DNA of 64,000 nucleotides from the NCBI GenBank assembly GCA_020184695.1, contig JAANOX010000063.1:105041-169040 (forward strand), written 5' to 3'. The notes below the pieces were generated by a model. The model saw only the letters and a list, made by a program, of their open reading frames with translations, had not been told where the DNA came from and made no database searches. Positions within the stretch are counted from its first letter, which is position 1. The number at the start of each line of letters is the position of its first letter. Positions 1 to 23,105 of this stretch are shown here, piece after piece. Both the position numbers and the translations under genes were made by a program. The DNA comes from Histomonas meleagridis 2922-C6/04-290x (Eukaryota > Protista > Parabasalia).

Positions 1-709
1 AAGCATACAGAAAAAGTAATATGGAAATATTTAAATTACTTCTCGAGCATGGAATAGATATTAATGCAAAAACTATTTATTTACCTAATTTAATTTTTAT
101 TTTTATCATTTGTTGTTTCAAAATAACATTTGGAAATTATTCAAATTATTTATGACAGCACTTATTTATGCATCTGAAAGAGGTGACACTGAAATAGTTA
201 AATTACTTCTTGAACAAGAAAAAATTGATGTTAATGCTAAAGATATTTGTTAATTTTTTTTAATGTTTGTTATAAAAAACTAACATTTGTAAATAACACA
301 TGGAAATTATTTAAATCATTTTCAACAGCATTTATTGAAGCATCTAGAAATGGTCATATTGAAATTGTTAAATTACTTCTTAATCAAGGAATTGATATTA
401 ATGCTAAAGATATTTGTAGGTTTTAATTGAAATTTATTTTAACAATTTTATATTTCAAGACAACATTTGGAAATTATTTTACATATTTTGGACAGCTCTT
501 ATGAAAGCGTCTTATGGGTTTCATGATGAAGTAATTAAATTTCTTCAAGAACAAGAAGAAATTGATATTAATGCTAAAAATATTCAAATTTTTTAATCAA
601 TATATATCATAATATTTTGATGGTTCAAAATAACATTTGGAAATTATTCTTATTATTTATGACAGCATCTATGATTGCAGAAAACATTATAAATCGTTTT
701 TGTTCTTGA
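1..709 (+). CDS. 3' part of an ankyrin-repeat gene whose repeats are interrupted by 80-nt spacers (runs off the window's left edge)
   Basis: Open ankyrin blocks 1-74 (partial), 155-244 (TALIYASERGDTEIVKLLLEQEKIDVNAKD), 325-411, 492-581, and a tail 662-709 ending in TGA. Spacers 75-154, 245-324, 412-491 and 582-661 are each 80 nt. Confidence 0.85.
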
Positions 710-1430
710 ATTTCTATTAATAATTTATTAAACAAAAATAAAACATTTTTTTTTTTTTTTACTGATTACTATACATATAATTTTTTTTTCTTTAAAATGT
801 TGTTTGTTAAATAGTGTTAAGAATTTGAAATAATAGAAGTGATGGCTCAAGGAGATTTTGTTGAAGATGAAAAAGATTTTTGTTGGTGAGATTGAGATAA
901 TATTAGAGAATATTAGATATGGATGTAATAAAATGATTGATGTCAAATTCGGGTATTTGAACATTAGCAATGTCAAGAAAAAGAAGGATTTGAACAAGCA
1001 TATGTTGGAGTGTGCCAAATTTGGATGATTCATATTCATAATTTGAAAAATGCCAAAAATTACTCTAACCAAGAGGAGCAAGATCTCATTTGTAGTATGG
1101 ATAATTAATGTTGCTAATTGAGTTTCTATCGAATTATCATCAAAAATTAGATTTTGATTTTTGGAAGGAATAGCTTGAGGAATTGTTTAGCTGAAGATTT
1201 AAATAATTACCTTAATTGAAATGATTGTGTACCTACATCTTCTTTAACATACTGAATAAAAATCAGAAAGCTTTTACACACAAACTTTTATTCCTACATG
1301 TAAACTTCGTGAGGCTCACATGTGCGTATAATGTCTTCAAATCTGACCAAAAAATTCATGAGAAATTAAGTGACACGTCCACTTCTTATAAATGATTTTG
1401 TTAAAATATTTGCGCGTTTATTTATTCAAA

Positions 1431-3203
1431 TTAATTTAAGCATTTCGCTTTACAGCCATTTTTTACCCAGAAACAGTAGAAAATTGTTGTTGCCAGTATC
1501 CCAGCGCCAACAGCTATGCTATAAACGAGAACCACATTAAGTCCCGTTTGTAGAGCAGAGAGACGTGGAGTAAACACAGAGCTTAACACATTTATACATT
1601 TAGTGTCCATGCTTCTCGATGTTGTATAATTCCCATAACTCAAGACGAAGTTATTTTGTCGTACAAAAATTTCATGATTTCCAAATGCGTTTTCCCCAAT
1701 TTCACCAATACTATCCCCACAAAAAATAACATAATTAACATTGGGAGCATAAAAAGCATAATCGCCAATGTATTCAGCATCATCATTAAGGAAAACAATG
1801 GATAATTGTTCATACCTATAAAATGCAAATGGCATAACTTTCTTAACTGATAAACCAAAGCTTGCAGCATCACACACTGGACAACCAAAGTATACAGTCG
1901 TATTGCTTTTGTCTAAAACATATCCAAAATCAGAATTATAATTAAAACTTGTGCTGTTTTCATCAACATCAATATCGGTTAAATTGGTGCACCCTATAAC
2001 GGGGTTACCCAAAATGTCGGTTATGTTGTAGTGAATTCGGAGATACGTTAAGGAGGTGCAATTCATAAAAGAACAATTACGAAGCGTATTGACAGAAAAA
2101 GGAATATCGAAATCTCTAAGGGAATAACAGAAGGCAAAACAATAACCAGGGATTTCTGTGATGATGCTATTTTCAAATTCAATGGTTCGAATATTTATAC
2201 ACGCTCCAAACGCATATTGCGCAATCGATGAAATACTAGCTGGAACTAAAAATTTGTTATCTCTGTAACCAGGAGGGCAACGGACGAGATGGGTTTTGTT
2301 CTTACTGTAAATTGTACCATTTATTTCCGAATAATGAATACTTTGTTCATCAACAACAAATCTATACAATTCATTGCCTTGAACTAAGAAACCATCCATG
2401 AGTGTAATTATCCTTCTAGGAATATGAAATTCTGTGAGTCTAGATCTAGTAAAAGCATATGGATTTATTGTCAAATCAGATCCTTCAGAAAAGGCAATAT
2501 TTGAAAGAGTGGTAAGCGCGAACGCGTAGGTGTCAATAATTCTAACTTTCGACGGAATGTGTATTGTTGTAATATTAGATGACGAAAATGAGTACTGAGC
2601 TATGACTTCAGTATCTTCATCAATTTCAATTGGTTCGCTTATCACTTTAGGCGAAATCCAGAGGGAATTATTTTGATATAAAATTGATTTGATTAATTTA
2701 AAGTTTGGACTTTTGTTTCCAATACGTTTAATGCCTGTACATCCAGAAAAAGCGTTTGCATAAATATTATGCACTTTTTCTGGTATATCAATCTCGGTTA
2801 GTGATATGCAATTTCTGAATGCAAAAGAATTGATAATTTCAAGACTATCAGGCAATGTAATTGAGCTCAGGGCGTAACAGTTTTCAAAGGCGGAAATAGG
2901 TATTTCTTTGATTTGTGAAGAAATTTTAATTGATTGAAGGGCATTTAAGTCGAAAAAGCATTTATTTCCAATACTTTCAATAGAATCTGTCATTTCAATC
3001 GATTGTAGGCTAGTGCATGATTGAAAAGCATCTTCTGCTATTGATTTAAAATTATCTGATATAATAATTTTTGTTATTTCGGATCTTTTTATTCCTTTAT
3101 ATAACACATCTTTGAAACTAACAGTATTGGTCCCGTCATATTCAATTGTCAATTCAGTATCATTTAGTTTGGATATAACAAGGAAACAGAAGCACACAAA
3201 CAT
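1431..3203 (-). CDS. BspA-like leucine-rich repeat (LRR_5) surface protein, type I membrane
   Basis: Repeated IxxxAFxxCxxLxxIxLP units, hydrophobic N-terminus from ATG at 3203, C-terminal TM helix (VVLVYSIAVGAGILATTIFYCFWV). Confidence 0.9.
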   Translation of the reverse strand: MFVCFCFLVISKLNDTELTIEYDGTNTVSFKDVLYKGIKRSEITKIIISDNFKSIAEDAFQSCTSLQSIEMTDSIESIGNKCFFDLNALQSIKISSQIKEIPISAFENCYALSSITLPDSLEIINSFAFRNCISLTEIDIPEKVHNIYANAFSGCTGIKRIGNKSPNFKLIKSILYQNNSLWISPKVISEPIEIDEDTEVIAQYSFSSSNITTIHIPSKVRIIDTYAFALTTLSNIAFSEGSDLTINPYAFTRSRLTEFHIPRRIITLMDGFLVQGNELYRFVVDEQSIHYSEINGTIYSKNKTHLVRCPPGYRDNKFLVPASISSIAQYAFGACINIRTIEFENSIITEIPGYCFAFCYSLRDFDIPFSVNTLRNCSFMNCTSLTYLRIHYNITDILGNPVIGCTNLTDIDVDENSTSFNYNSDFGYVLDKSNTTVYFGCPVCDAASFGLSVKKVMPFAFYRYEQLSIVFLNDDAEYIGDYAFYAPNVNYVIFCGDSIGEIGENAFGNHEIFVRQNNFVLSYGNYTTSRSMDTKCINVLSSVFTPRLSALQTGLNVVLVYSIAVGAGILATTIFYCFWVKNGCKAKCLN

Positions 3204-3697
3204 GCTGGTCACAAAGCACTTTTTGAGTTTATTAAAAAATATTTTTTCAAACGTTTTTGTGGTTAATAAATTCAATTGATTTCATATTAAAATACGTTAT
3301 CACTGATGAATTCAATAACGGGAACTGTCTTCATCAGAAAAACATAACGTCATTACAAAAATTTTTCGGAACATCAACCTTCCAGTTTTTATGGTTATAA
3401 AATAACGATGATTTTTTATTCATTTAGCTTTATCGTTGGGAAACCGTTTAAAGCTTTAAATTGGCCAATTCATGAATATAAATTGTATACAAATATTTCA
3501 TTTATAAAAAATGAGATAATGTGTTCAAAATATTTTCTATATTTGATATTTTTCTAATTAGAAGGAAAGAAATGTTCTTACCATTCATGTTTGAGTTAAT
3601 GAGTTGCGCACATTTATAAATGATATATTTCATTCCGAAAACAAAAGGTATCTTATTAGTTACTTTTATTAAAAATCATATTTGTATTTACCGCATT

Positions 3698-4594
3698 TCA
3701 ATCACTCTGTCTTGTATAGTATGGATTTTCATTGAACATGATATCATGTTTTTTAAACAAGTACACAGATATCTGTCCGAGTAATGAAGGGACAAAATCA
3801 AACAAGAAATAATAGAAAAATGATATAATCCTTGCATTTGCATTTGGCATTTCGCCACTTTTTTCAAGCTGACTCGAGACATAATTTTGCAGGGGATTGA
3901 TGCTAAAGTATTGCGTGCCATTGTAGAGCATTCTAAGCAGAAATATGACAACAAATGCGATGATTCCAACTTTACAGAAATTAACACAACAGACGTCCTC
4001 AGGCTGAACCATCGGATAAGTTACGGCTTCAAGAAGTGAAAAAGCAGGTAGAGTAAAGAAAATTGCAATGATTAAATCTGTGCATGCACCCCAAAGAGAA
4101 AGTGAGATATCAGGGTCAACAGAGTCATGGAGATCATAAAAGCTAAGGAAAATGCCAAGGGCTACAAATGTAACAAGAAAAAGTATGAAAAGATATCTGA
4201 AGAATTTTGTTGAACGAGTTCCTGGGCTACGATATGTAAATAATAAATCAAAAAGAATAAGAATTACAAGGCACATAGAAGTGAATAATAATATGCGGTC
4301 TAAAGCAACAAAAAATATTTTGAAAGTTCTTGGTTCCCAATGGAAAGGAACAAGTGCTATAGTTCCTCTGTATAACTGAAAAATAGCTAAAAATACCCAG
4401 AATACTGAAGTTTGGTCAATTATAGATTTTTTAGATTTGGAATTTTTGATATTCATTATTAAAAAGATAATGCTGACTAAAGATCCACCATAAAAAAGGA
4501 TACCTAAAAAAATGCTTTCCGGAATATTACATCCAAACCCAGGTAATACATTTTTGCATACAAATTCTTTGTCCCAATTATCTGTCGAATTCAT
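3698..4594 (-). CDS. Multi-pass (about 7 TM) membrane protein, GPCR-like/THH1-TOM1-like
   Basis: 298-aa ORF with about 7 hydrophobic segments; family assignment is tentative. Confidence 0.7.
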   Translation of the reverse strand: MNSTDNWDKEFVCKNVLPGFGCNIPESIFLGILFYGGSLVSIIFLIMNIKNSKSKKSIIDQTSVFWVFLAIFQLYRGTIALVPFHWEPRTFKIFFVALDRILLFTSMCLVILILFDLLFTYRSPGTRSTKFFRYLFILFLVTFVALGIFLSFYDLHDSVDPDISLSLWGACTDLIIAIFFTLPAFSLLEAVTYPMVQPEDVCCVNFCKVGIIAFVVIFLLRMLYNGTQYFSINPLQNYVSSQLEKSGEMPNANARIISFFYYFLFDFVPSLLGQISVYLFKKHDIMFNENPYYTRQSD

Positions 4595-4653
4595 TTTTAA
4601 TGTCGGTTAACTCTCTTACAAAAAGTGGAATGGCTCAAAAGTGCCAAACGAGC

Positions 4654-4661
4654 GGCCGTTA
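4654..4661 (+). promoter_or_regulatory. M3-like core promoter element (GGCCGTTA) in an 88-bp divergent intergenic region
   Basis: Matches the trichomonad M3 consensus RRCSGYTD, about 22 nt upstream of ATG 4683. Similar motifs precede other genes (6376, 28097-28104 minus, 34251, 41493). Confidence 0.6.
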
Positions 4662-4682
4662 ATTATCTGCAATAAATTTTAA

Positions 4683-6221
4683 ATGTCTTCATCAAAACCA
4701 GAGAAAAGCAAACAACAAAAAGCCTATTTATTTGATGTTTCAGTTGTTTCATTACCATTAAATTTTGCTGTTCTTCTTAATCCTATAATGATAAAAAAAT
4801 TAAAAATATCAGAATCAAACACTGCCTTAATTAAAAGCACTTCTGGCAACATAGCATTTGTCCATGTGTTTGAAGATTCTGGATGTCCTCAATCTGAAGT
4901 GAAAATTCCACGAACTGTTCAAATGTCATTAAATGCAAATATAGGAGAATCGGTTCCAATCTTATCATATGAAAGTGAAAGTCAATGTAGTGCATTAAAT
5001 ATTGCGCCTTTATTTAATGATAAAGATGTAAATTATTCTTCTCGAGTTTCACAATATTTCACATCTACTGCACGAACAGTTTCAAGGTGTTCTATTTTCA
5101 TGCTTCTAATTGATGAAATTCCTCGATTTTTTCAAATCACGCAATGTTTACCAAAAGAAAGATGTATTACAACAGGGGACACAAAAGTATTTTTTGACAA
5201 AACAAAGTATGTGGTAACTGATTATCCAATTATTCCATATAGTTTTTCAGATATTGCATTTGAAAAAACTATTATTGAGCTTGTTCGAAATGCTGTTTGG
5301 CTTCCAATGAATAGACCTCAGTTATATGATATCCTTGATATTGATACATCTAGTGGCTTAATAGTTTATAGTAAGAAAGGAAATGGAAAAACCGCTTTTT
5401 TATCGGCGGTTGCTAAAATTTTAAACGTTCCCACGAGATACGTTTATTGTAAAAATTTGGGGCACTCCAAAAATGCGATAGCACAAATTAGAAAAGTTTT
5501 TGAATTTGCTTATTCTCAAAATAAATGTCTTCTAGTTTTCGATGATATTGACTATATTGCAAATGATATTAGTAAATGTAAGTACTCTGAAGAAAGAGAA
5601 AGAACTGCACAATTTATCTCATTGTTAGATAAAGCAATGAAGAATCCAAAATTCTCAATCATAGCTTCTTCATCTTCGAAAGGTAGCATTGATAATTCAT
5701 TAATTCGTATTGGTCGATTTGGTTATGAAATTGATCTTGACGATGTAACAATCACAGAGAAAGAAGAAATAATACGTCTCAACACTCGAGGTTTAAGTAA
5801 TCCTTCTCTTGATATTAGTTCTTTGGCTGCAAATTATACTGAAGGTTTTACAAGATCTGATGTTGAAAAATTTTGTATGAATGCAATTGCAAAAATGATC
5901 AATCCGATGAATCCTTTAGTTGTTAGTGATGTTCCAAACAACTTAATTGCGTTTTCTACTACAACAAAACTTAATCTAAATCACTTCATTGAGCGTAACA
6001 TTCCAAGACGTGAATCATTTAATGATCAAGTAGACACAATCAATGCCTTTATTGAAGGAAATCAATCACCACAAAAGATTAAGAACCCATTTGCAAGAAA
6101 TACATATGGAGAAGAACCTGAAGAACAGAGAAAACCTAATCCTTTTGCTAATAGTGGAAGGCAAGAAACAGGCGAACATAGTCAATTTATGCAACGTGGA
6201 TGGAAAAATCCATTTGCATAA
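4683..6221 (+). CDS. Divergent CDC48/p97-like AAA+ ATPase (N-domain plus one AAA module) with a C-terminal NPF-motif tail
   Basis: N-domain-like VKIPRTVQMSLNANIGESV, Walker A-like SKKGNGKT, Walker B LVFDDID, SRH-like IDNSLIRIGRF, three NPFA motifs at the C-terminus. Confidence 0.8.
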   Translation: MSSSKPEKSKQQKAYLFDVSVVSLPLNFAVLLNPIMIKKLKISESNTALIKSTSGNIAFVHVFEDSGCPQSEVKIPRTVQMSLNANIGESVPILSYESESQCSALNIAPLFNDKDVNYSSRVSQYFTSTARTVSRCSIFMLLIDEIPRFFQITQCLPKERCITTGDTKVFFDKTKYVVTDYPIIPYSFSDIAFEKTIIELVRNAVWLPMNRPQLYDILDIDTSSGLIVYSKKGNGKTAFLSAVAKILNVPTRYVYCKNLGHSKNAIAQIRKVFEFAYSQNKCLLVFDDIDYIANDISKCKYSEERERTAQFISLLDKAMKNPKFSIIASSSSKGSIDNSLIRIGRFGYEIDLDDVTITEKEEIIRLNTRGLSNPSLDISSLAANYTEGFTRSDVEKFCMNAIAKMINPMNPLVVSDVPNNLIAFSTTTKLNLNHFIERNIPRRESFNDQVDTINAFIEGNQSPQKIKNPFARNTYGEEPEEQRKPNPFANSGRQETGEHSQFMQRGWKNPFA

Positions 6222-6375
6222 TTCCAAAAATTATAATTTGTTTATAAATGCTGTTTGATTTATTTTTTCTTATTACACCGTTATTGTTTAGCTTCTAATA
6301 ATTTTTTTTATTCCCGATTAAAAACATATTTTTTTAGGATATATTGTCACTTTTCAATTATAAACAACTCAATAT

Positions 6376-6393
6376 AACCGTTTTCAAGTCACT
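6376..6393 (+). promoter_or_regulatory. M3-like element (AACCGTTT) plus initiator (TCACT)
   Basis: AACCGTTT at 6376-6383 and TCACT at 6389-6393, 15 nt before ATG 6409; typical trichomonad core promoter layout. Confidence 0.7.
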
Positions 6394-6408
6394 TTTTAAA
6401 ATATTAAA

Positions 6409-8535
6409 ATGTCACAGCACTCTTTCGTTGAAGCAAATGTTCATGCAATGGTAGAAATTTGTTTAAACTCAGATCTTGATCATCTTGAACAGTATGTTAA
6501 CAACAATTTTGGACAAGGCTTTGGTCTTGATTTTTGTCTTGATGATCAAAAGCAAACACTTCTTCATATTCTAGCGGGAAATCTACAATTTGAATATTGG
6601 GACACAATACTTAGATGCTTTGTTTATGTAAATTCACCAGATGCAAACCAACATACACCACTTCATATTGCAGTTTCCAAACGAAATATCAAAGCCATTC
6701 GAGCGCTTGTAGCTGCTGGTGCTTCTATGACCAATGAAGATGAGCATGGTGTTAATCCTTTTCAACTTGCTTGTAAAAGTGATTTTAAAGATGGTCTTGA
6801 AGTCTTTCTTAGCACACCCACTGGTATGCGTTATCTTAAGTCCAATTTTACCAGCAATGCTTGTTTATGTATCGATAATAATTCCATAGAATGTTTCAAA
6901 ACAATCATTCGAAGTGTTCCTGAAGCCAAACTCAACGAACTCAATGAAGATGGCAATGCTCTTATACATTATGCTGCCCAAAGTAAATCCAAAAAGTTTC
7001 TTCGGGCATTATTAGATCTTAAAGTTGACATAAATCTTCCCAACAAATCCGGCTCTACACCAATCGAATGTGCCACCAAAGAAAAGTCCGCAGTTCTATT
7101 GTATATTAAAGGCGCCAACATTCCAAAAGTCCAAAACAACAAAAAACTTCCTCCGATCATCGAAAGCATTACGAAAGAAAGTAATTGGCAGTCCACAGGC
7201 GAATGTTTTACTCCATGTGAGTTACATAAGTTTGCCATGGAAGGTAATGCGCAAGGTATTTTATCACTTAATTCCAAGAAAGTCGATATCATTGATTGTT
7301 TTTCATATTCTCCATTAATGTATGCAGTTGAATACTTTAAAGATCCGACTGCAATTTCTGCATTACTTAAACAAGGCGCAGATCCCAATTTTCCATCGAC
7401 AAAGTCTAAATCCAATTTAACAAATGCATATCATTTAGCAGCGTTAAAAGGTAATGCAGTAGCAATTCTTGAATTTAAGAAGAAGTTTGCACCGAATTTC
7501 TCATACTTAGATAAGAAAGGACGAAATTTAATATTATGTTCAATATTATCCAAAGATATCACAACTATTAATGAGATCGTTTTAGCAGCGCCAAATATTG
7601 ATGGACCTTTTGATCAAATAATTAAAGCATTATTATCGATAGAAAATGATTCAACATTAGCAGAAGTAACAAAAATATTAATATCGAAAGGTTTACCAGC
7701 TAAATCTGTTGATGAACATGAAAAGTCATTAATAATGTATGGAATTGAAACCGGGAAATCGAAATTTGTTGAAGTTTTATTAAATAATGGCGCGTTAACA
7801 GAACTTGAAGCAGATGATGCAATCATCACAGCTGTTAAGAATGATCAACCAGATATAGTTATATCATTATTAAGTTCTACAAATCCATTACAATTAAATG
7901 TAAATCCATTAATAATGCATCAAGGATTACCATTAATATTTTATACAATTAATAAGTCGATGGACATATTAAAAGTATTATTTACATCAAATCAAACAAT
8001 TAAAACTCAAATAGATACTAAAGGTAATACATTTTTACATCGAGCTGCTTATTTAGGTAATTTAGAATGTATTAAATATGCAATTGAAGTGATGAAAATT
8101 GATGTTAACATTATTAATAATCAAGGAGAAACACCATTACATAAGTTAATGCATGATTTATCAAACAACTTTGAGAACAATTATAAATATTTAGTTGAAA
8201 AAGGTGCAAATATTAAACAACTTGATAATTCAGGTAATAATATATTACATTTCGCTGCCGAAAATAATAACAAAGATGCGTTAAGTATATTATTAGGATT
8301 AGAAAATGTTAATGAACCAATTCTAAGTGAAAATGATATCAATGAAATGATACAACAACAAAATAATGATGAAAGAATACCATTAGAAGTTGCATCGAAA
8401 CATTTATCTGATTTAAAGAGTGCTTTTGCAATGAACAAGAAATGGCAACTTAAAATATTCGATGGTCCTATTACTGATGAAACATTTCAAGAGTTTGCAC
8501 AAAAGAACTTATCGCCGAATGTTAAAAAAACATGA
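6409..8535 (+). CDS. Ankyrin-repeat protein (probably the N-terminal part of an Ank-RhoGEF gene split by a frameshift)
   Basis: Many uninterrupted ankyrin repeats (QHTPLHIAV, GNTFLHRAA, GETPLHKL, GNNILHFAA); stop overlaps the next ATG (ATGA). Confidence 0.85.
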   Translation: MSQHSFVEANVHAMVEICLNSDLDHLEQYVNNNFGQGFGLDFCLDDQKQTLLHILAGNLQFEYWDTILRCFVYVNSPDANQHTPLHIAVSKRNIKAIRALVAAGASMTNEDEHGVNPFQLACKSDFKDGLEVFLSTPTGMRYLKSNFTSNACLCIDNNSIECFKTIIRSVPEAKLNELNEDGNALIHYAAQSKSKKFLRALLDLKVDINLPNKSGSTPIECATKEKSAVLLYIKGANIPKVQNNKKLPPIIESITKESNWQSTGECFTPCELHKFAMEGNAQGILSLNSKKVDIIDCFSYSPLMYAVEYFKDPTAISALLKQGADPNFPSTKSKSNLTNAYHLAALKGNAVAILEFKKKFAPNFSYLDKKGRNLILCSILSKDITTINEIVLAAPNIDGPFDQIIKALLSIENDSTLAEVTKILISKGLPAKSVDEHEKSLIMYGIETGKSKFVEVLLNNGALTELEADDAIITAVKNDQPDIVISLLSSTNPLQLNVNPLIMHQGLPLIFYTINKSMDILKVLFTSNQTIKTQIDTKGNTFLHRAAYLGNLECIKYAIEVMKIDVNIINNQGETPLHKLMHDLSNNFENNYKYLVEKGANIKQLDNSGNNILHFAAENNNKDALSILLGLENVNEPILSENDINEMIQQQNNDERIPLEVASKHLSDLKSAFAMNKKWQLKIFDGPITDETFQEFAQKNLSPNVKKT

Positions 8536-10136
8536 AAGGAACACCATTAATTACATATGTAATGGACAATTGTGAAAATAAGGATTCTATTGTAGGCTAT
8601 GTCCAAAACTTATTATTATTCGGCGCTGATCCTTCTAGTCAAGACACAGAAGAATTAACACCATTACATCATGCTATAGCATTAAAGAACAATGAGTTAG
8701 CGAAGATATTAATCGATGAAGGCTCATCATTCATCATAGGACCTATCATACGTGTATATGCTGAAGAGAATGGAACGCCTGAAATGCTCGACTTGATAAA
8801 GCAACCAGAAAAAAGAGCATCAGCAGTCGACGAATTTTTACAGACGCAAATTAATGCCGTGGATACAATGGCTGCGATATTGAAGTTTAAGAATCGATTT
8901 AATCGGCCGAACGAAGATTTAACAATTCGCTTTTATATGGATGAAGTCTCGAAAATGCATCGATTGTTATCATTGTTTGTAGATCGCCTTCGAAAGATAT
9001 CACATAATATGAAACCATCTGCAGAGTTTGGTAACTTCTTTATGTATTTTGTCGATGCATTTATCCCATTATTAAATATACCAACTGTATATCATACGGC
9101 GTTAAGCGAAATACAACAAATTCCAGAGCTAGCGCAAATATTAACTGAAAGCGTTGGATTTAATAACTATAACTTGGCCGACACTTTGATTGTACCTGTA
9201 CAACAATTCACGAGATATCATGAATTAATTAGAGCGATAATTAAGGCTACACCTCCCGACCATCCGGATATAGCACAATTACAACGAGCGCATCTAAAAT
9301 ATAATAACTTAGGAAGAGCTTCAAACGAAAGAATGTTAATTGCGGAAAGTAGAGAAAAACTGAAAACAATAACATTGAAATCAACGGTTAACGATAAGAT
9401 GAGTCAATATAATCCAAATGATGTGTTGCTTTATCATGGATTATTCGAAAAGAAATCACCACAATTACCTCCGGAAGGTACAAAAGTCTCCGAATCTTAT
9501 GAATGGGGTCTGAAAACAAACCAAATTCAATCAGGAAAAATTAACGTGCAATATTATACAACGTTCGGAAAAAGTTTGAAGTCGTTTATGAAGTCACAGA
9601 AAATTGGAATTTTTCTGTTCAGTAAGATAGCTTTGTTTGGTTTACAGAAAAACGAAGAACTATTCAAAATCAAGTTTTCATGTCACTCCTCTGAAATTTT
9701 GTGGGACTTCTCAAAAAGTTTGGGGCCTGATACGTTCCAAATATGGACGCCAATAGGTCAATTCGTATTAAAAATTGAACCTCCTAAGAACTCAACTGCA
9801 GACTTCGAAAAAACTCAGTGGAAAAATAACGTGGCAAAACTTTCAAAAATCGATGAATCAGAAATGTCAACTGTAAATGGTAAGGAAATTTGTTACGTTT
9901 CTTGGGCTGGTAAAGAAACTCATTGCGTGCACTCAAAATTGTTCATGGTTCATTGCGCAGATAAAGAAGAAGCAAAGAAGAAAATATTGGAAAAATTGGA
10001 ACAATTAGGAACACCAATAGAAACAATACCAAACCCAATGGGCGGTACAGAGCCATTAGTAAGCTTTTGGTTCCAAACACATTGTCCACCACAAGGTCAA
10101 GACACCGACATTTTGTCTGATGTGAACCTTCTTTGA
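8532..10136 (+). CDS. Ankyrin + DH (RhoGEF) + PH-like domain protein (C-terminal part)
   Basis: Ankyrin ELTPLHHAIA; DH signature LIVPVQQFTRYHELIRAIIKATPPDHPDIAQL; PH-like IFLFSKIALF...FQIWTP. Confidence 0.85.
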   Translation: MKGTPLITYVMDNCENKDSIVGYVQNLLLFGADPSSQDTEELTPLHHAIALKNNELAKILIDEGSSFIIGPIIRVYAEENGTPEMLDLIKQPEKRASAVDEFLQTQINAVDTMAAILKFKNRFNRPNEDLTIRFYMDEVSKMHRLLSLFVDRLRKISHNMKPSAEFGNFFMYFVDAFIPLLNIPTVYHTALSEIQQIPELAQILTESVGFNNYNLADTLIVPVQQFTRYHELIRAIIKATPPDHPDIAQLQRAHLKYNNLGRASNERMLIAESREKLKTITLKSTVNDKMSQYNPNDVLLYHGLFEKKSPQLPPEGTKVSESYEWGLKTNQIQSGKINVQYYTTFGKSLKSFMKSQKIGIFLFSKIALFGLQKNEELFKIKFSCHSSEILWDFSKSLGPDTFQIWTPIGQFVLKIEPPKNSTADFEKTQWKNNVAKLSKIDESEMSTVNGKEICYVSWAGKETHCVHSKLFMVHCADKEEAKKKILEKLEQLGTPIETIPNPMGGTEPLVSFWFQTHCPPQGQDTDILSDVNLL

Positions 10137-10305
10137 TTAAATAATAAATTGAGCCGATAAATATCTTTTAGATTAAGGAAAACTATTTGTAATTTTATGC
10201 ATTTATTAAAGATGAAGCAAAAAATCTTTTTAATCGTTTTATATAGAAAAAGTTGCTTACAACAGTTGTCATTTTATTTGTTCACAAATAAAAAATGACA
10301 TTCTA

Positions 10306-12334: not shown

Positions 12335-12557
12335 AATTCCAAAATTTTCGAAAACATATGTTTTTAAAACAAAATTATTTTGAATAATAATGTTTTGATA
12401 TAGGAGGAATTTTGATTAACGAGTGTATCTCTATAGATATAATCCTTTTTGCATTTCAAAGGCATAAAGATATTTGATTCACATGTGTTTTTTTATTACT
12501 TTTCTCATTTTATTCCTTGCCAACGTAAAAGTGCACTTTTTTATAGGCGGCAAAATT

Positions 12558-15548: not shown

Positions 15549-15789
15549 TAAACTGTTTATTTATTCATTTTTCATTAAGTTTGTATAAGATGCAAGTATG
15601 ATTTAAGTAAATACTGATGTTCCAACATCAGAAAGCTATCAGTACTGTTAATGATACAGACAAACCAAATGATCACAAATTAAATCGTAAATATAACATG
15701 TACGATTTTATTATTAGCATTTTTTTAAGCTTTGATATTTTTTTTTACAAAGCAATAAAAATCGCTTTGGCCATTCTGCCTAATTTTAG

Positions 15790-16015
15790 ATAAAACACAG
15801 AAATTCTAAGCATTGATATCAAATTACCCCATTCTTGTTCAAGAAACAATGCAACTATTTTTGTTACTTTTGGAAAATAAACATTAAACAAAATAAACAA
15901 AAATCTTTAGCATTAATATCAATTCCTTTTTGTTCAAGAAGTATTTTAAATATTTCAATAAGACCATTATAGAAAGAACGAATGTGCTGTATCATATTAT
16001 TTTCATAATAATTTC
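15790..16015 (-). pseudogene. Degenerate relic of the spacer-interrupted ankyrin repeat family
   Basis: Minus strand reads GGAAATTATT...GAT ACA GCA...(frameshift) NGLIEIFKILLEQKGIDINAKDF, then a truncated spacer and a second broken unit. Confidence 0.7.
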
Positions 16016-16064
16016 CTAACCGTAAAAGTGACATCTTCTTTCATTACTTTAACTTTTGCTCAAA

Positions 16065-17990
16065 ATGATTTCTTCAGCAAGCAATGCTGATAATCTCCAT
16101 ACAAACAAAGAATATCTCATAACGTTAATGCGTTTAGAGCAAATTATCTTAAATTTAGACAATAATAATGTTCAAGAAACGGTTCAATCAGTAATTAATT
16201 TGTTTGATAATAAGTATTCATATTCATATAAATATATTGTTTGTAGACTTGTTTATTCATCTTTTGTTTCAAGACGAAAAGATTCTAACATTTGTTTTGA
16301 TTTTCTTAAGTTAATTAATCAAAAATATGAAAACTCAAACAAAAATGAAATATTTAATTTATTTAGTAAATCTATTTTTAGTAAAAATACTCAAGAATCA
16401 TATTATCTTTTAGCACAAATGGCTGAAAACAATTTGATTGATCCCGAAATCATTAAATATAAATTATTACATTTTGCACATTACATGGAAGAAGACCGGA
16501 ATCGATATCAATATTATAATTTTCATAATGAATTTATTCAAAATTATGACGAACTTTCGAAAGACGATTGGAAACTTCATAAAAAATTATTAAAAGAAGG
16601 AGTTAATCCAAATACACTTTTAAAAATAATTCGAAATGATGAAATTGAAAAACTTCAAGAAATATCATCACAACCAAATTTTGATTTTAATCAAAGAATT
16701 GAACCATCGCTCTATGAAAGATGTTCACTTATTAACAACAATTATGTTACATTAATTGATTATGCAGCATTTTTTTCTGCGATTAAATGTTTTAAATTTT
16801 TACTTATGAATGGTTCTGTTTTAGTTACCAAAACAAGTTTATATGCAATTGCAGGTGGAAACATTGAAATTATTCATTTATGTGAACAAAATCATTTACC
16901 ATTTAGAAACGCATATAAAATAGCAATTGAATATCATCAAAATGATATCTTTAAATATCTATATGAAAATTCATATATTGAATCAAAAGAATTAAATGAT
17001 TCAGTAGAAAAATGTGTTTTATATGATTCATATGAAATTTTATCATATTTAGAAGAAAAAGAAGTGAAAATATTTGACTCTATTATATATACAACAGCTG
17101 AAAATGGTAATTTATTACTTATAAAACATTTTCTTAAAACAAATCAATATCCGAAAAATATTTTAATTGCAACAACATATTCAGGAAATATTGAACTTGT
17201 TAAATATTTTATAAGTAAAAAAGGATTTGATGTTAATGCATGTAATAATTTATATTTTGATATTTTTATGTTTTATAATAATATATGGAATTTTTTCAAA
17301 GTATTTCAAACAGCACTTATGATTGCATCTTTAAATGGAAAGGTTCAGGCTGTTAAATTACTTCTTGAACAAGAAGGAATCGATGTAAATATAAAGGCTA
17401 TTTATTTATATTAGTTAAAGATTAATCTTTGTATTCTTTATTTCAAAATAATATTTGGATTTCTTTTTTGTTATTTGAAACTGCTTTAATTTATGCATCT
17501 GAAAACGGACATACAGATATTGTGAAATTACTTCTTCAACAAAAAGATATTGATGTAAATTCTAAAGGAATTTCATTGGTTTAATTAGAGTTTATTTTTT
17601 AAATTTGCTGTTTATAAATAATTTTTGGAATTTATTTATATGACATTGGACTGCTCTTATTATTGCAGCAGAAAATAATCATATCGATATCGTTAAATTA
17701 CTTCTCGAAAAAAAAGGTATAGATATTAATGCTAAAAATGTTTATATGTTCAACTTTGGATTTGTTATATTAATTTTATATCCGAAAATAATATTTGGAA
17801 ATTATAAAAATTATTTCAAACAGCACTTTATTATGCAACAAAAGAAGGTCACACAGAAATAGTTAATTTACTTCTTGAACAAAAAGGAATCGAAATTAAT
17901 GATAAAAATATCAATTTGTTTTATTTGAAATTTATATAAATAATTTAAAGTTTAAAAATAACATTTAAAAATTATTTCTAATATTTTAGT
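16065..17990 (+). CDS. DUF3447/ankyrin-repeat gene with spacer-interrupted C-terminal repeats
   Basis: DUF3447-type TLIDYAAFFSAIKCFKFLLMNG...AIAGGNIEIIHLCE. Open 90-nt ankyrin blocks at 17310-17399, 17480-17569, 17650-17739 and 17820-17909. Spacers are 63, 80, 80 and 80 nt, plus a terminal one. The ORF track stops at 17414 only because of a spacer. Confidence 0.85.
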
Positions 17991-18225
17991 ATCCAAGAAA
18001 TGTTTATAACAAAATCCATATTTTAATTCAAGAAATAATAATTACAAACAAATTTATTTCAAGTAAAATACAATCAATAGATTTGACTTTTTTAAACAAC
18101 ATTCAATTAAGTTCTTTATTTTGTATTCAAATTCAAGAAAATATTGTATAATTTAACATTTCTTTTATAATCAAAAACAACAAATTTAGAATATTTTATT
18201 TATACAAACACAAACAAAAACAATA

Positions 18226-20010
18226 TCAAAATCGCTTTCCATTAACTTCAACTTCGAGCTTTTCTGTAAACCTTGCAAAAGTCGGATTTTGTTCTTCAAT
18301 AAAAAAATTTGTTAATATTTCTCCATTCGAACATTTCGTTATTGGAACTTCATACTTATCTGAGATCTCTTGAATTTCCTCATCATGATTTAGGTCATCA
18401 AGTATAACTGCAATTCCATCAAAATCACGAATAAAAACTATAAACTTAAAAGCTCCGATTGATGAACGTTGCAACCTATGAGGAAATGAAAGAGGTGGTA
18501 ACAATAAAATTGGGTATAAAATTCTTCTCATTATATCAACTGTTGAATTCATCAAATTGAGTACAGTAGCCACTTTTTCAATAGCCGTGGCAGAACTTTT
18601 GTACATGTCTGAAATTTGAATGGAATACATAAAAAGTGGAACATCTCGGAAAAGTGGTAAAATCGACCGTTTGTAATAACCGTCGGATGACCACGCTGAA
18701 ACGAGTTGAATGCATCTTTCTCGATGCTCTCTATAAGATTCTTCATAACTAATATAATACGAATCAACAGCACACTGTCTAGCCAAATAACAACCATATA
18801 AAACACCATCAAAGCTCTCAACATTAGATGTTGATCTTGCTTCAAATCCTAAAACTCGAAGTATTTTCTTGCCGTCAGACCTTATTCCAGTTACAACGAT
18901 CTGAAACACGAGTGATTGTGAATTACTTGGTCTAGTCATTTTTGCATCAACAAATATCGAAGATTGACCATCAAGCATAGTCAACAATGTCTCAGGGCCC
19001 GTTATATTTCTTCTAGAGCTCAACTGCAGAACCTCAAAGCAGTTAGGAGTCAAAACTTTTACTCTTGCTCCAAACAGTGAATCAGATTTAAGGAATTGAT
19101 ACAACTCTGGCGCAACAAGATCATTTGATCCAAGCTCAAAAAGATGAACCCTATCACAGTACTTTGCAAAGCTACTACAGTCTGCGTTTTTCGAAGTAAA
19201 CAAATGTATGGAAACTCTTTTTGATGCAAGAACTTCTTTTAAAGACGCGTCGAGCTCGAACGGGCTCTGTAAATCCATCGAGAATGCGCAGAGACATATG
19301 TGCGCGTGCTTGAGATTCTTTAGAAGTGCAGAAAGATGGTTGAAAAAGTCCGAACCGGTTATTGTAGATTTATCTGATGAATTCATTGATGCAAAGGAAG
19401 GTAAAAAATGCGCTTCTTTTGAGTTGCATATGATTAGAGGTGGGTAGTTGATGTCAAAATATGTGAAAGAGCGAGGTTTTTGTAAATCATAGTATGTGAT
19501 TTTTGGTCCAATTTTAATAAGTGATACATCAGCGTCAACAGAATGTGACCAATCATCAAGTAAGCTCCCAAGTATAGTTTTACTGGTTTCATTGATGAAA
19601 AAAAATTGATTATGAAAAATAAATAAATATAAAGGCTTTTCATTTTGACTGAGAATTATGTCATATATTTCGCTTTGTGGTAAAAACGTTTGTGGTTTGA
19701 TTGCATTTTTAGTTTTACAAACACCACATTCCCAATGATTTGCTGAAAAGTCACAAAAATGAGAAGGAAATGCATGACATTTAATACACCTTGGAACTTT
19801 GGAATTTTTGTTAGGACTTTCTAATGGTGGCTTTGCTTTTATTGGTGAAACTTCAAAAACATATGTAATTTTATTTTTGTTCAAAAAGCTTGGTGTAGAT
19901 GGAAACAATTTAAAGCAATTTCGTATCCAATGTTTGTTACATTTTGCTTGAGAAAATAAATCTGAAGACATGGTTGGCTGCATTGATTGTGCCAGTCCAG
20001 TCTCATTCAT
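18226..20010 (-). CDS. Sec23/Sec24-family COPII coat protein (Sec24-like)
   Basis: Zinc finger PRCIKCHAFPSHFCDF...WECGVCKTKN, followed by trunk, beta-sandwich and helical segments ending RRILYP. Confidence 0.85.
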   Translation of the reverse strand: MNETGLAQSMQPTMSSDLFSQAKCNKHWIRNCFKLFPSTPSFLNKNKITYVFEVSPIKAKPPLESPNKNSKVPRCIKCHAFPSHFCDFSANHWECGVCKTKNAIKPQTFLPQSEIYDIILSQNEKPLYLFIFHNQFFFINETSKTILGSLLDDWSHSVDADVSLIKIGPKITYYDLQKPRSFTYFDINYPPLIICNSKEAHFLPSFASMNSSDKSTITGSDFFNHLSALLKNLKHAHICLCAFSMDLQSPFELDASLKEVLASKRVSIHLFTSKNADCSSFAKYCDRVHLFELGSNDLVAPELYQFLKSDSLFGARVKVLTPNCFEVLQLSSRRNITGPETLLTMLDGQSSIFVDAKMTRPSNSQSLVFQIVVTGIRSDGKKILRVLGFEARSTSNVESFDGVLYGCYLARQCAVDSYYISYEESYREHRERCIQLVSAWSSDGYYKRSILPLFRDVPLFMYSIQISDMYKSSATAIEKVATVLNLMNSTVDIMRRILYPILLLPPLSFPHRLQRSSIGAFKFIVFIRDFDGIAVILDDLNHDEEIQEISDKYEVPITKCSNGEILTNFFIEEQNPTFARFTEKLEVEVNGKRF

Positions 20011-21077
20011 ACGAAATGTGATATGAAAAAATATGGATTGGATGATGAAAAACAAATATTAAACATTATGATATTTTATTATACCACACAGGGTTTGACT
20101 TACATCTCTGACACCTATTAAAATATAAAAAAAATTGAGATTTTAAAATATCACATGGGAATTATCAAATATATTTTAGAACAATTATAAAATACTCTAT
20201 GATAATTAGTTAAATCAGTTCTTAAAAAGTCCTATTAAAAAAAATATAATTAAAAAATCAATACACTGATTAATACTTCAAAATTTCTTTATTGTTCCGA
20301 AGTCAGATAACCTTGTTTCCAAAGCACATGCATTATTACATACTTGAATAAGATCTACTATTTAGAAATTAAATTTTAATTTCATAAAACAAAAATATAT
20401 TTTTTTATATACACTAATTAAAAATAAAACATAAAATACATGTGTTATGTATTGTTGCTACGGGAAGCAAGCAATAAAAACATTTGAATAAATGACTTTT
20501 CATTTTTTTTTTTTTTGTTTTTTGTTTTTAAAAACCAATTCAATTCAATGAATCATTCGAAATAAAAGTAATTTTATTCCTTATTTTCAAGATTTCTTGA
20601 TGATTATCACCAGTTTAATATTATTGGGAAAATGATTTTTATAACAAATTTTTATTCAAAAGGGGTTAGGAAATCATGATATTAATATCGTTCTTTTTCT
20701 TGAGGTTCTTGTTTCTAAAGAAATTCATGTGATTGGAAATACGATTGTTAAAATTTTTACCAAATTAGTGGGGGAAAGGTTAAAGAAGTAGAATTGCTCA
20801 GGTATAAACTTGCTTCATGAATTGGATACATTTCTGGAGTGATTTTCGATTTCTATAATTGTTTACTACAAAATCGGTAGATTTATCGAAAATTTTTATG
20901 CATAATATGAGTAGCGTAATCAACGTCTCAACAAGAATTACATTAGAAATTCTTCACAGTGGAAAGTTGAGGGTACCAAACATCATTATTTACACCCAAT
21001 TTGAAAAGTGACACGAATTCAATACATATCGTTCAGTACAAATCCTGAGCAAATCCCTGTTAAAAGCACCAAAAAAA

Positions 21078-23105
21078 ATGAAAAATCAAATTCAAAGTGA
21101 ATGGGAAACACTCACATTAATCGAGAAGATGTTTTTTGATTTGAATGGAAAAAATCTTATGAAATCAACAAATTCAATAATTAACAATTTTGATAATATT
21201 CATCCAATATCTTGCAACATAATTATTTCTCAAATTTTATATACTTTGTGTGCTACAAATATTTATGATTTTGATATGTGTTTAAATTTTTTAAAGGAAA
21301 TTGAAGCACTTGAAGCGAGTAAAAAAGTCAACCCAAGCTTTTTTCGAAATATTCTGAGATATTCTTATTAAAAAGAATACACAAGAATCATTTTATCTTC
21401 TTGAAAATTTGGTTGAACATAATTTTATTCAACCAAACTTCATTCAAACCGTAAAGAATCCATATTTTGCACATTATATGTCAAAAAGAGAAATAAAAAA
21501 ACTTGAATATTTCGATTTTAAGGATCAAATCCTAGATAATTATGAAGAACTATCAAAGAATGATTGGGAACTTCATAAACAATTAATTAAAGAAGGACAT
21601 AATCCAAATGAAATATCAAAAATAATTCGAAATGATGAAATAGAAAAACTCCAAGAAATATCATCACAAAATGATTTTAATTTTAATCAAATAATTCCAA
21701 AATCACTTTATGAAAGATGTTCAATTATAAATGAAAATTATAAAATTGTTAGATTAATTGATTATGCAGCATTTTTCGGATCAATTAAATGTTTTAAATA
21801 TTTACTTGTAAATGGCGCAGATTTAAAAGACACAGGCAAATTTTCTGTAGCAGGAGGAAATGAAGAAATTATTCATTTATGTAAGCAAAATCATATATCA
21901 TTTCAAGGATCAATTAAAATAGCAATTAAATTCCATAAAAATGATATATTTAAATATTTATATGAAAATAATAATAAAAGGTTTAAAAACTTAACTGATT
22001 TAGGAAAAGAATGTATTTTATATCATAATTATGAGATTTTTACATTTTTACTGGAAAATGGAATGAAAATCAACGATGATATTATTAATGAAGCAACACG
22101 AAATGGAAATTTATATCTTGTCAAATACTTTCATAAAGAATATCCACGCCTTCCAAATAATATATTACTTATTTCATCAGAAACAAGAAACATTGAACTT
22201 GTTAAATATATTTTGGAACAAAATGAAATCGATGTCAGCACGAAGAATGTTTTAATTGTTTCATTTAAAGTTTATTTTTGCAAATTGATATTTCATATTA
22301 ACAATTGGAATTTGCTCATGTTATATTGTACATCATTTTTGCTTGCATGTAAATATGGTTTCAATGAAATGGTTGAAATACTTATTAAAATAAATGGAAT
22401 TGATATTCATGTTAAAGATATTTATATATTTTGTTTAATACTTGTCTAAATAATTTTCTGTTTCAAAATAATATTTGGAAATTTTTCATGTTATTTGATA
22501 CAGCACTTATTTTAGCATCTAAATATGGCAATACAGAAATAGTTAAATTACTTCTTGAACAAGAAGGAATTGATATCAGTGAGAAGAATATTTTTTTTGG
22601 TGCGTTTAAAAATTGTTTTAGTAATTTTTTGTTTAAAAATAATTTTTAATATTTTTTTAAATATTATTGGTCAGCATTAATGAATGCATCTAAAAATGAT
22701 CACACTGAAATAGTTAAATTACTTCTTAAACAAGAAAAAATTGATGTTAATGAAAAAAACTTTATTTTATTTTGTTTAATATTTATTTCAATGATTTTCT
22801 ATTTCAAAATAATTTTCGGAAATTATTTTAAATATTTGATACAGTCCTTATCATAGCATCTTCAAATGGTCATACAGAAATAGTTAAATTACTTCTTGAA
22901 CAAGAAGGAATTGATATTAATGCTAAAAATATTTATTTGTTTTATTTGAAATTTATTTTAATAATTTTATATTTCAAAGTATTTTTTGGAAATTATTTAA
23001 ATTATTTGATACAGCACTTATGAAAGCATCTTCAAAAGGTTATACAGAAATAGTTAAATTACTTCTTGAACAAGAAGGAATTGATATTAATGCTAAAGAG
23101 ATTTA
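21078..23105 (+). CDS. DUF3447/ankyrin-repeat gene with spacer-interrupted repeats; frameshift near 21355; 3' end cut by the transposon
   Basis: ORFs 21078-21371 and 21409-22449 join by a 1-frame shift and align with the 16065 paralog (KNTQES.YLL). Ankyrin blocks at 22330-22419, 22500-22589, 22671-22760, 22841-22930 and 23011-23100; spacers 81, 80, 81, 80 and 80 nt. May be a pseudogene. Confidence 0.8.

Follow-up and report, generated by a model that had tools for sequence, protein, structure and literature searches.

Candidate introns without GT-AG termini between the repeats of an ankyrin gene family in Histomonas meleagridis

Parabasalids are textbook intron-poor eukaryotes. The Histomonas genome paper describes at most one intron per gene (PMC8529796). 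The window analyzed here, a 64,000-nt stretch of contig JAANOX010000063.1 from Histomonas meleagridis, contains ankyrin genes whose repeats are separated by short spacers, most of which break the reading frame. The question raised by this arrangement is whether the spacers are removed from the message, as an initial annotation made from the sequence had proposed, or whether translation simply ends in them.

Reading of the sequence places 14 spacers in three ankyrin genes, 11 of 80 nt, 2 of 81 nt, and 1 of 63 nt. In these genes, C-terminal ankyrin blocks of 90 nt alternate with spacers, and the family carries a DUF3447 domain at the N-terminus. The blocks are 87 to 90 nt long and stop-free, read T/S-A-L...I-D-I/V-N-x-K-D/N, and flank each spacer on both sides. 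Tandem Repeats Finder detected a 170-nt period at 1-648 and 22396-23105. The 13 spacers listed by the initial annotation were all borne out, namely, those of 80 nt starting at 75, 245, 412, 582, 17400, 17570, 17740, 22420, 22761, and 22931, those of 81 nt at 22249 and 22590, and that of 63 nt at 17247; a fourteenth (17910-17989, 80 nt) had been overlooked. The features are as follows, with excised pieces predicted by the cut/rejoin rule described below.

1-709, + strand: ankyrin gene 0, 3' end, with a partial block and three full blocks (155-244, 325-411, 492-581)
75-154, + strand: gene 0 spacer, 80 nt; predicted excised piece 72-151, by rule
245-324, + strand: gene 0 spacer, 80 nt; predicted excised piece 242-321
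412-491, + strand: gene 0 spacer, 80 nt; predicted excised piece 409-488
582-661, + strand: gene 0 spacer, 80 nt; predicted excised piece 579-658
662-709, + strand: divergent last exon of gene 0, 15 codons, ending in TGA at 707-709
16066-17989, + strand: ankyrin gene 1, ATG at 16066, N-terminal DUF3447 and degenerate ankyrins
17247-17309, + strand: gene 1 spacer, 63 nt, the first of the gene; in frame, free of stops, and without the initial 17 nt of the 80-nt consensus
17310-17399, 17480-17569, 17650-17739, and 17820-17909, + strand: gene 1 blocks, from sequence reading
17400-17479, + strand: gene 1 spacer, 80 nt, holding the stop that ends the uninterrupted ORF 16056-17414
17570-17649, + strand: gene 1 spacer, 80 nt, from sequence reading
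17740-17819, + strand: gene 1 spacer, 80 nt, from sequence reading
17910-17989, + strand: gene 1 spacer, 80 nt, the final one, located behind block 17820-17909, with RNA contig boundaries inside
17987-17989, + strand: TAG stop of gene 1 under the predicted splicing; RNA joint at 17987
21079-23106, + strand: ankyrin gene 2, ATG at 21079, DUF3447 region, five blocks, TAG at 23104-23106
22249-22329, + strand: first spacer of gene 2, 81 nt, in frame and stop-free; predicted excised piece 22246-22326
22330-22419, 22500-22589, 22671-22760, 22841-22930, and 23011-23100, + strand: gene 2 blocks, from sequence reading
22420-22499, + strand: gene 2 spacer, 80 nt; predicted excised piece 22417-22496
22590-22670, + strand: gene 2 spacer, 81 nt, in which TTTAA replaces TTTGG
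22761-22840, + strand: gene 2 spacer, 80 nt, from sequence reading
22931-23010, + strand: gene 2 spacer, 80 nt, from sequence reading

The blocks are ankyrin repeats by the PF00023/PF12796 profiles: a Pfam search with the gene 1 ORF matched Ank at residues 418-447 (E = 3e-12) and Ank_2 (E = 1.6e-13), with DUF3447 upstream. The uninterrupted gene at 6409-8532, among those cited by the initial annotation for comparison, is likewise a genuine ankyrin protein (Pfam Ank_2, E = 5e-45). Near 21339-21356 in gene 2, RNA contigs are one base shorter than the genome and carry two substitutions, and with the RNA letters used there the frame is open from the ATG. Chance is excluded as the source of the spacer/block pattern.

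The same architecture is found in two other H. meleagridis loci (L003 and L004) and in two metagenome contigs (L001 and L002), and arrays elsewhere in the H. meleagridis genome reach ∼19 units. The spacers are specific to one gene family and were amplified jointly with the repeat unit, both as initially suggested, and the described spacer start (read here as ATTT/GTTT), core TTTCAAAATAAYATTTGGAA, and end (ATTT-NNN) were all found. A consensus and information profile was built from 27 copies. The fixed modules of the spacers are R-T-T-T-R-T directly behind the last codon of the block, an internal TTTCAAAATAAY, and a 3' YTTGG. In 44 of 56 spacers, the GG stands at a distance of exactly 21 nt from the following block; these 56 range from 46 to 91 nt and include the divergent L003 family. 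The 5' part varies in length while the GG-to-block distance is fixed, and YTTGG together with the 21 nt behind it forms a constant 3' module of 26 nt. A length of 80 nt is not a general property, as the L003 gene, another Histomonas gene, has spacers of 46 to 67 nt. Spacer-less block junctions in relatives measure 12 nt (L001) and 9 nt (L004). In L004, the array is decaying in its first part. Among other trichomonad contigs (L005 to L007), an ankyrin junction of L005 is interrupted by ∼115 nt of AT-rich sequence that does not correspond to this module. No paper describing these spacers was found in the literature.

Selection on the two components was assessed against a neutral expectation obtained by placing an equal number of substitutions at random on the consensus. 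Forty-seven of 51 blocks are stop-free, whereas 17.6 to 19.3 were expected (standard deviation about 3.5, maximum 31), and the blocks contain 6 stops versus 48 to 53 expected. In the 80-nt spacers, stops numbered 27 in the downstream frame (34 to 36 expected) and 40 in the upstream frame (38 to 40 expected). Since stops are avoided in blocks but occur at the neutral rate in spacers, we conclude that blocks are translated and spacers are not, in agreement with the contrast drawn by the initial annotation. This difference in stop rate rejects a pseudogenic tandem repeat. The neutral rate of stops also rejects the spacer as a coding insertion, a candidate raised by NIYFNNFMFQNNIWNLFKLF, the downstream-frame consensus, and by the first spacers of 63 and 81 nt, which are open; synonymous changes in spacers show a marginal excess (z = 1.9). 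Orphan units in intergenic DNA, where no selection acts, contain stops and frameshifts, and orphan copies always comprise a block along with a spacer. Gene 2 terminates with AKEI-TAG immediately after its last block and gene 0 with its divergent 15-codon exon, gene ends that are consistent with translation of the arrays. Pairwise dN/dS between blocks is ∼0.6, a noisy value that is not decisive, and identity is 0.63 among spacers versus 0.65 among blocks.

Contigs from four presumed RNA runs (X1 to X4) were compared with the window; these are assembled pieces, in which chimeras are possible for a multicopy family. The contigs cease to match the genome at spacer edges, at 22327, 22420, 17987, and 17967, and the spacers thus behave like pieces taken out of the message, as had been claimed. 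Contigs of X3 and X4 match only 22327-22420, preceded by 64 to 66 foreign letters and followed by a single unmatched one, at a depth similar to that of the remainder of gene 2. Contigs of X2, X3, and X4 (1.9 to 2.1 kb) match from 17987 onward, each preceded by 58 foreign letters, and an X1 contig matches from 17967 onward, preceded by 55. Cuts from −9 to +9 nt around the spacer start were paired with rejoin sites from 0 to 24 nt ahead of the next block. Of these pairs, only one yields 22327, 17987, and 22420, namely, cutting 3 nt ahead of the spacer start and rejoining 3 nt ahead of the block. An unchanged cut with rejoining 21 nt before the block, right behind the GG, yields 17967. We infer these junctions from boundary arithmetic rather than from the far-side letters of the joints, and the arithmetic presupposes that the aligner extends each piece to its matching limit. 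If the rule holds, the whole 80 nt would be removed, as a spacer-length piece displaced 3 nt to the left, and the repeats would be 30 amino acids long. The initial proposal of a 68-nt excision that keeps 12 nt and restores repeats of 33 to 34 amino acids is not supported: with 6 nt kept per side, the RNA match would run from 22324 to 22425.

Not every spacer is absent from the RNA. One X1 contig matches the genome across 22561-22695 and retains spacer 22590, at a depth of 18 versus 27 to 35 for the other contigs of the gene. Among the longest pieces listed, no genome-matching contig crosses spacer 22249 or 22420, and retention is not the main form for these two. The RNA runs contain 0.22 to 0.44 of the words of 22249-23105, compared with 0.67 to 0.69 in the DNA runs. 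A protein-database query with the N-terminal part of the gene returned only paralogues of ≤58% identity, and a query with the read-through 22186-22419 returned no match.

Known intron and recoding classes were tested on the spacers. A canonical U2-type intron was rejected, since an in-frame, stop-free GT-AG option exists in just 10 of 40 spacers at scattered, inconsistent positions; the initial annotation had rightly reported no consistent GT..AG pair and no parabasalid 3' motif. Trichomonad-type signals (ACTAACACACAG at the 3' site, GTAYGT at the 5' site) are rare or missing, with ACTAAC in 1 of 56 spacers, CTAAC..AG in 0 of 56, and GTAYGT in 2 of 56. The same holds for the U12-type signals, 5' RTATCCTT and the branch TCCTTAAC at 10 to 16 nt from the 3' site (ATATCC in 1 of 56, CCTTAAY in 0 of 56). 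AT-AC termini recur only in combinations whose 3' end falls 2 or 7 nt into the next block; these would delete the conserved T or TAL codons and are at odds with the RNA boundary at 22327. The same test ruled out other termini up to 12 nt from the spacer edges. RNAalifold predicted 0 pairs for 26 spacers with 15-nt flanks, a lack of conserved secondary structure that rejects euglenid nonconventional, BHB (tRNA-type), and IRE1-type introns as well as a conserved hairpin in the spacer core. A programmed −1 frameshift at T-TTA-AAT has no path in 11 of 27 spacers and no common shift window, and for translational bypass of the T4 gene 60 or mitochondrial byps type, take-off and landing codons agree in 2 of 56. 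A GGA micro-exon between removable 17-nt modules fits lengths of 26, 46, 63, and 80 nt and would yield a canonical xxGx hairpin. It was rejected on its predicted match to 22425, its misfit with other L003 lengths, and its conflict with the L001 junction VMFE.

The explanation that we favor, with a probability of roughly 0.6, is that the spacers form a single large intron family and are removed from the pre-mRNA of DUF3447 ankyrin genes. These introns would have multiplied by tandem duplication along with the 90-nt repeat exon. The cut would fall after the Lys codon, so that the excised piece begins with the 3 nt of the D/N codon, and rejoining would occur behind ...ATTT, 3 nt ahead of the Thr codon. 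The excised piece would be of spacer length (80 nt) with termini RA...TT, leaving repeats of 30 residues that read x-TAL...NAK, and one run seems to use a second rejoin site, immediately after the GG. Because there are no conserved terminal dinucleotides while distances to internal motifs are fixed, we propose that the cut sites are measured, that is, located by distance from conserved internal motifs. The machinery could be a divergent spliceosome or something new. A more far-reaching version, which we offer tentatively and hold to be clearly the less probable, is that the spacers represent a new class of nuclear intron, ∼80 nt long, whose sites are fixed by their spacing from internal motifs instead of by GT/AG. 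The measuring motifs would then be the 5' RTTTRT and YTTGG plus 18 nt, the machinery a strongly remodelled spliceosome or a nonspliceosomal cut-and-ligate system, and the distribution hundreds to thousands of copies in H. meleagridis and perhaps its relatives.

Several observations count against the intron reading. The contig at 22420 ends one letter past the proposed joint instead of continuing into the next exon, which requires a branch in the assembly graph, e.g., through spliced and unspliced forms occurring together. Spacer 22590 is retained in X1 at near-exon depth. Termini of RA...TT are unprecedented among spliceosomal introns, ankyrin repeats of 30 residues are short, one L003 spacer ends in TAA, an in-frame stop under the cut/rejoin rule, and dN/dS between blocks is just ∼0.6.

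Some of these points also speak for the strongest competitor, which we nevertheless regard as unlikely: the gene stops at the first in-spacer stop, and the array past the first frame-breaking spacer is a tandem repeat within the 3' untranslated region, with blocks that gene conversion from functional ankyrin paralogues or recent amplification keeps open and RNA joints that are assembly chimeras among paralogues. Annotated Histomonas proteins and metagenome gene calls do all terminate a few codons into a spacer, and the first spacer is in frame and stop-free in genes 1 and 2 and in L002. Retention of spacer 22590, the dN/dS value, the near-equal likeness of spacers and blocks, and the decay at the start of the L004 array point the same way. 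Against it, stop avoidance in blocks lies ∼8 standard deviations above neutral, while spacers of the same ancestry sit at the neutral expectation, and proper stops in the block frame close the arrays. Furthermore, four RNA boundaries fall exactly on spacer edges with one common cut position, whereas chimeras would break at shared 31-mers within the block core and not at block edges.

Ordinary spliceosomal introns of ∼68 to 71 nt, with degenerate signals and A/G at +1, would keep 9 to 12 nt as hairpin codons. The 5' RTTTRT is similar to AT-rich 5' splice sites, e.g., GTTTGT, TAAY stands ∼28 nt ahead of the 3' edge, the spacer-less L001 junction GTCATG-TTTGAG resembles the first 6 plus last 6 nt of a spacer, and the last two codons are stop-free in 27 spacers. 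The boundaries that such introns predict (22324 and 22425) are nonetheless not those observed (22327 and 22420), the second codon is a stop in 2 of 27 spacers, and AG or AC is missing at the required place, which makes this version improbable. We give still less weight to joined RNA deriving from other DNA, be it spacer-less genomic copies, for which L001 and L004 junctions offer a precedent, or DNA excision in part of the cells: spacer-bearing sequence is present in the DNA runs, the exons flanking the joints match the window locus without mismatch, and depths equal those of the N-terminal contigs of the same gene. Finally, spacers kept in the mRNA and passed by a programmed −1 frameshift or by hopping would suit lengths that are mostly 2 mod 3 (the −1 frame), the T-TTA-AAT in the upstream-frame consensus, and a one-shift stop-free path in 16 of 27 spacers (10 to 12 expected). 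With 11 of 27 spacers offering no path, shift windows sharing no position, all three length classes among L003 spacers, a codon before the spacer equal to its last codon in just 2 of 56, and RNA contigs failing to match the genome across spacer edges, this last reading is close to refuted.

If the spacers are spliced, the introns of one gene family outnumber all others in the genome, and their termini lie outside what any known spliceosome is known to accept. Splice-site definition without GT and AG could then be studied directly, and the arrays would exemplify intron multiplication through repeat expansion. A large family of ankyrin proteins would also be truncated in the published proteome of Histomonas, a significant pathogen of poultry. 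A new intron class, if true, would be abundant in a lineage held to be nearly intron-free.

The nearest comparison is with Trichomonas vaginalis and T. stableri, which have type A/B spliceosomal introns, 63 to 81 per genome and one or two per gene (PMC12316389). These are 23 to 196 nt long, are bounded by GT/AG, and have a 5' motif of 7 nt as well as an ACTAA joined directly to the 3' site; the 63 validated introns of T. vaginalis are all GT-AG with rigid motifs (PMC12316389). Like them, the Histomonas spacers are short AT-rich inserts in parabasalid nuclear protein-coding genes with an internal motif at a fixed distance from the 3' cut; unlike them, the spacers lack GT-AG and ACTAAC..AG, number 4 to ∼19 per gene, and probably amount to many hundreds per genome. 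The termini of U12-type introns are not necessarily GT-AG, and the spacing from the branch site, under loose sequence requirements, determines which 3' site is used. The 3' site proposed for the spacers would be distance-based by analogy, while RTATCCTT and TCCTTAAC are missing from them. Euglenid nonconventional introns are nuclear, numerous, and precisely excised, lack GT-AG as the spacers do, and are defined by base pairing that draws their ends together, whereas RNAalifold found no conserved pair in 26 spacers. In vertebrate ankyrin genes and spider Flag silk, each repeat is one exon, with a constant intron place and phase, and exon and intron were duplicated jointly, but those introns are canonical GT-AG introns of variable length, unlike the spacers. 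Introner-like elements resemble the spacers in forming many near-identical short copies of one family; introners, however, enter unrelated sites and bring or create GT-AG, whereas the Histomonas spacers occupy one fixed position in the repeat.

The window is AT-rich (~28% GC) and dense with long uninterrupted ORFs. Three genes on the + strand carry at their 3' ends tandem 170-nt units, each made of a 90-nt ankyrin block and a T-rich spacer, as follows.

1-709, + strand: gene 0, 3' end only, tandem 170-nt units
16066-17989, + strand: gene 1, tandem 170-nt units at its end
21079-23106, + strand: gene 2, tandem 170-nt units at its end

The thirteen spacers of the initial annotation (ten of 80 nt, two of 81 nt, and one of 63 nt) all proved correctly placed when the sequence was read again, and a fourteenth, of 80 nt, was found at 17910-17989. 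Genes 1 and 2 are both complete, with ~390 uninterrupted codons upstream of the array that encode DUF3447 and degenerate ankyrins. The arrays terminate sensibly in genes 0 and 2: the former ends in a short divergent exon and the latter in ...INAKEI-TAG directly behind the last block. At 21339-21356 in gene 2, contigs from all four RNA runs deviate from the genome (a T missing from the RNA at 21339, T>A at 21355, G>C at 21356). Read with the RNA bases, the gene has an open frame from its ATG (21079); the genome bases lead into a TAA at about 21369. The mismatch is probably an error in the long-read genome assembly or a strain difference. Elsewhere in the window, two + strand ORFs at 6409-10136 share a 4-nt overlap. 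The first encodes an ankyrin protein of 708 aa and the second a 534-aa protein that has both ankyrin and RhoGEF domains; the two may belong to a single gene that a frameshift, genomic or due to the assembly, has divided. Downstream of gene 2, a T-rich tandem array (24396-24701; periods of 18, 35, and 88 nt) is unrelated to the ankyrin units.

Stop frequency in blocks and spacers, a comparison proposed in the initial annotation, was assessed by placing substitutions, in the number and of the kinds observed, randomly on the consensus and counting the resulting stops. The contrast is fair because blocks and spacers have a common duplication history.

Stop codons seen and expected in blocks and spacers
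Blocks (51 copies): 6 seen, 48-53 expected
80-nt spacers, downstream frame: 27 seen, 34-36 expected
80-nt spacers, upstream frame: 40 seen, 38-40 expected

Spacers are thus near neutral, while 47 of the 51 blocks are free of stops, against 17.6-19.3 expected (standard deviation ~3.5, maximum 31 in 200 trials). Selection keeps the blocks open, and the spacers are read in neither frame. The outcome without selection is shown by two decayed intergenic orphan units. One (61990-62145, +), behind the gene at 60656-61918, has a spacer-like core (GGATTTCAAAATAATATTTAAAAA) and then an ankyrin block interrupted by a TAA; in the other (15880-16000, -), directly upstream of gene 1 on the opposite strand, a frameshifted block is followed by a spacer start (TTTTGTTTATTTTGTTTAATGTTTATTTTCC).

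The 80-nt spacers have the consensus ATTTATTTATTTTATTTAATATTTATTTTAATnATTTnATGTTTCAAAATAATATTTGGAATTTATTTAAATTATTTnAn, with the strongest columns at a GG, the first four bases, and TTTAA near position 17. Among 56 spacers with lengths of 46-91 nt, 44 have the GG exactly 21 nt ahead of the spacer end, and these include 8 of 9 from L003, a second H. meleagridis locus. Eight of the 12 remaining spacers show a motif altered by one or two bases at that position (TTTGA/ATTGA in five, TTTAA in two, TTTGC in one). The length of the 5' part ranges between 20 and 65 nt; in most 63-nt spacers the first 17 nt are missing, and 83-nt spacers have their 3 additional nt upstream of the core. With the GG spacing fixed and the 5' part variable, the invariant is therefore a 26-nt 3' module and not total length.

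Expression was assessed with assembled contigs from four runs of one study (X1-X4). Their type is labelled "RNA?", and we argue that they are RNA because coverage is uneven, one run has an intergenic stretch of zero depth, and contigs total only ~30 Mb. Most listed joints come from paralogue contigs with normal 12-nt linkers, which are uninformative on this gene and were left aside. Contigs of 159 and 161 nt in X3 and X4 fit the genome only at 22327-22420, flanked by 64-66 nonmatching letters to the left and a single one to the right; their depths (51 and 383) are comparable to those of gene 2 N-terminal contigs. Contigs of 1.9-2.1 kb in X2, X3, and X4 match from 17987 onward, each preceded by 58 other letters, and the corresponding X1 contig matches from 17967, preceded by 55. 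No contig matching across spacer 22249 or 22420 was found among the longest pieces listed. A 135-nt X1 contig matches across 22561-22695, so that spacer 22590 is retained there. Sampled words of 22249-23105 were present at 0.22-0.44 in RNA runs versus 0.67-0.69 in DNA runs.

We scanned cuts within 9 nt of the spacer start on either side and rejoining points 0-24 nt before the next block, computing for each pair the start or end of the maximal matching piece. Only one pair yields 22327, 17987, and 22420 followed by mismatch: a cut 3 nt before the spacer, behind the Lys codon, and rejoining 3 nt before the block. If the rejoining point is moved to 21 nt ahead of the block, immediately after the GG position, and the cut is left unchanged, the result is 17967. 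For the gene 1 contigs, the left end calculated for the upstream exon is 17849 or 17850, consistent to within one base. The 68-nt excision suggested initially, which would retain 6 nt at either side, puts the boundaries at 22324 and 22425 and disagrees with the contigs. By the new rule, the excised piece would consist of the D/N codon and the spacer minus its last codon, equal in length to the spacer, with termini RA...TT, or ...GG at the alternative site. Exons of 30 codons (x-TAL...NAK) would remain, and gene 1 would end at the TAG at 17987-17989, right behind its last junction. Behind the last spacer of gene 1, 56 stop-free codons (17990-18160, +) lie in frame with this TAG; they are readable only with rejoining at the AG at 17988-17989, which the RNA contigs do not show.

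We put the probability that spacers are excised from RNA by this rule at about 0.58. The figure reflects junctions taken from contig match boundaries, a rule that presupposes simple joining to the neighboring exon and maximal aligner extension, a contig at 22420 that stops one letter past the joint and so requires that the assembly graph branch there, the one retained spacer, an L003 spacer ending in TAA that would read as a stop, and 30-residue ankyrin repeats, which are unusually short.

Other readings fare worse against the spacers themselves. As stated initially, there is no consistent GT..AG pair: removal of a canonical intron would leave the product in frame and free of stops for only 10 of 40 spacers, and the positions are scattered. 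The reported lack of a parabasalid 3' motif also holds, with CTAAC..AG in 0 of 56 spacers; the other Trichomonas-type signals (PMC12316389) are nearly as rare (ACTAAC in 1/56, GTAYGT in 2/56). U12 motifs are essentially absent from the 56, and the recurrent AT-AC options would remove conserved T or TAL codons. RNAalifold found 0 conserved base pairs in 26 spacers with flanks, which argues against definition by structure, whether of euglenid, BHB, or IRE1 type.

Translation through the spacers is similarly disfavored. With a single frameshift, ribosomes could get through no more than 16 of 27 spacers, and there is no position common to the permitted windows. As to ribosome hopping, the last codon of the spacer is identical to the codon preceding the spacer in 2 of 56. 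Read as a coding insertion, the downstream frame gives a peptide (...FQNNIWKLFKLF.) such as AT-rich DNA yields, with stops at the neutral rate and only a marginal excess of synonymous changes.

The closest named relatives are H. meleagridis proteins, and traces of the window's sequence are present in chicken gut metagenomes. The H. meleagridis genome is described as 43 Mb long, with a GC content of 28% and no more than one intron in any gene, ankyrin genes being unmentioned (PMC8529796). A profile of the blocks found the same architecture in two further loci of this species. L003 is a more divergent gene with spacers of 46-67 nt whose lengths represent every class modulo 3. L004 has two unannotated arrays of 18-19 units each behind DUF3447 genes, with spacers mostly of 80 nt but also of 83, 81, 63, 26, 23, and 9 nt; three 26-nt spacers consist of a 9-nt junction and 17 nt beginning ATTTATTT. 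These arrays (12686-20833 of contig WSYJ01000186, ~8 kb) contain no called gene, and blocks have stops in the first third and are intact in the remainder. Two metagenome contigs have one 80-nt and one 63-nt spacer, and one of them (L001) also has a 12-nt junction without a spacer. In a DUF3447-type gene of another trichomonad-like organism (Logan assembly, L005, 4200-4330), an ankyrin junction holds an AT-rich insert of ~115 nt that contains TATTTGG and lacks the 21-nt spacing; judging from it, interrupted ankyrin junctions may be more widespread. Annotated proteins and gene calls of spacer-bearing genes all end a few codons into a spacer, and current models therefore truncate the ankyrin family.

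A literature search found no paper describing these elements. If excised as proposed, the spacers would be nuclear introns of a variant form; that they constitute a new class of intron is a real possibility, though less likely than not. Genes in which each repeat forms an exon and was duplicated together with its intron are familiar from vertebrates (ankyrin genes) and spiders (silk genes), and the spacer genes resemble these in that architecture. The splice signals, unlike the architecture, are not familiar, failing the trichomonad U2-type, U12-type, AT-AC, euglenid, and structure-defined tests. The minor spliceosome selects a 3' site according to how far it lies from the branch site, and this is the nearest functional analogy to the spacers, although its defining motifs are absent from them.
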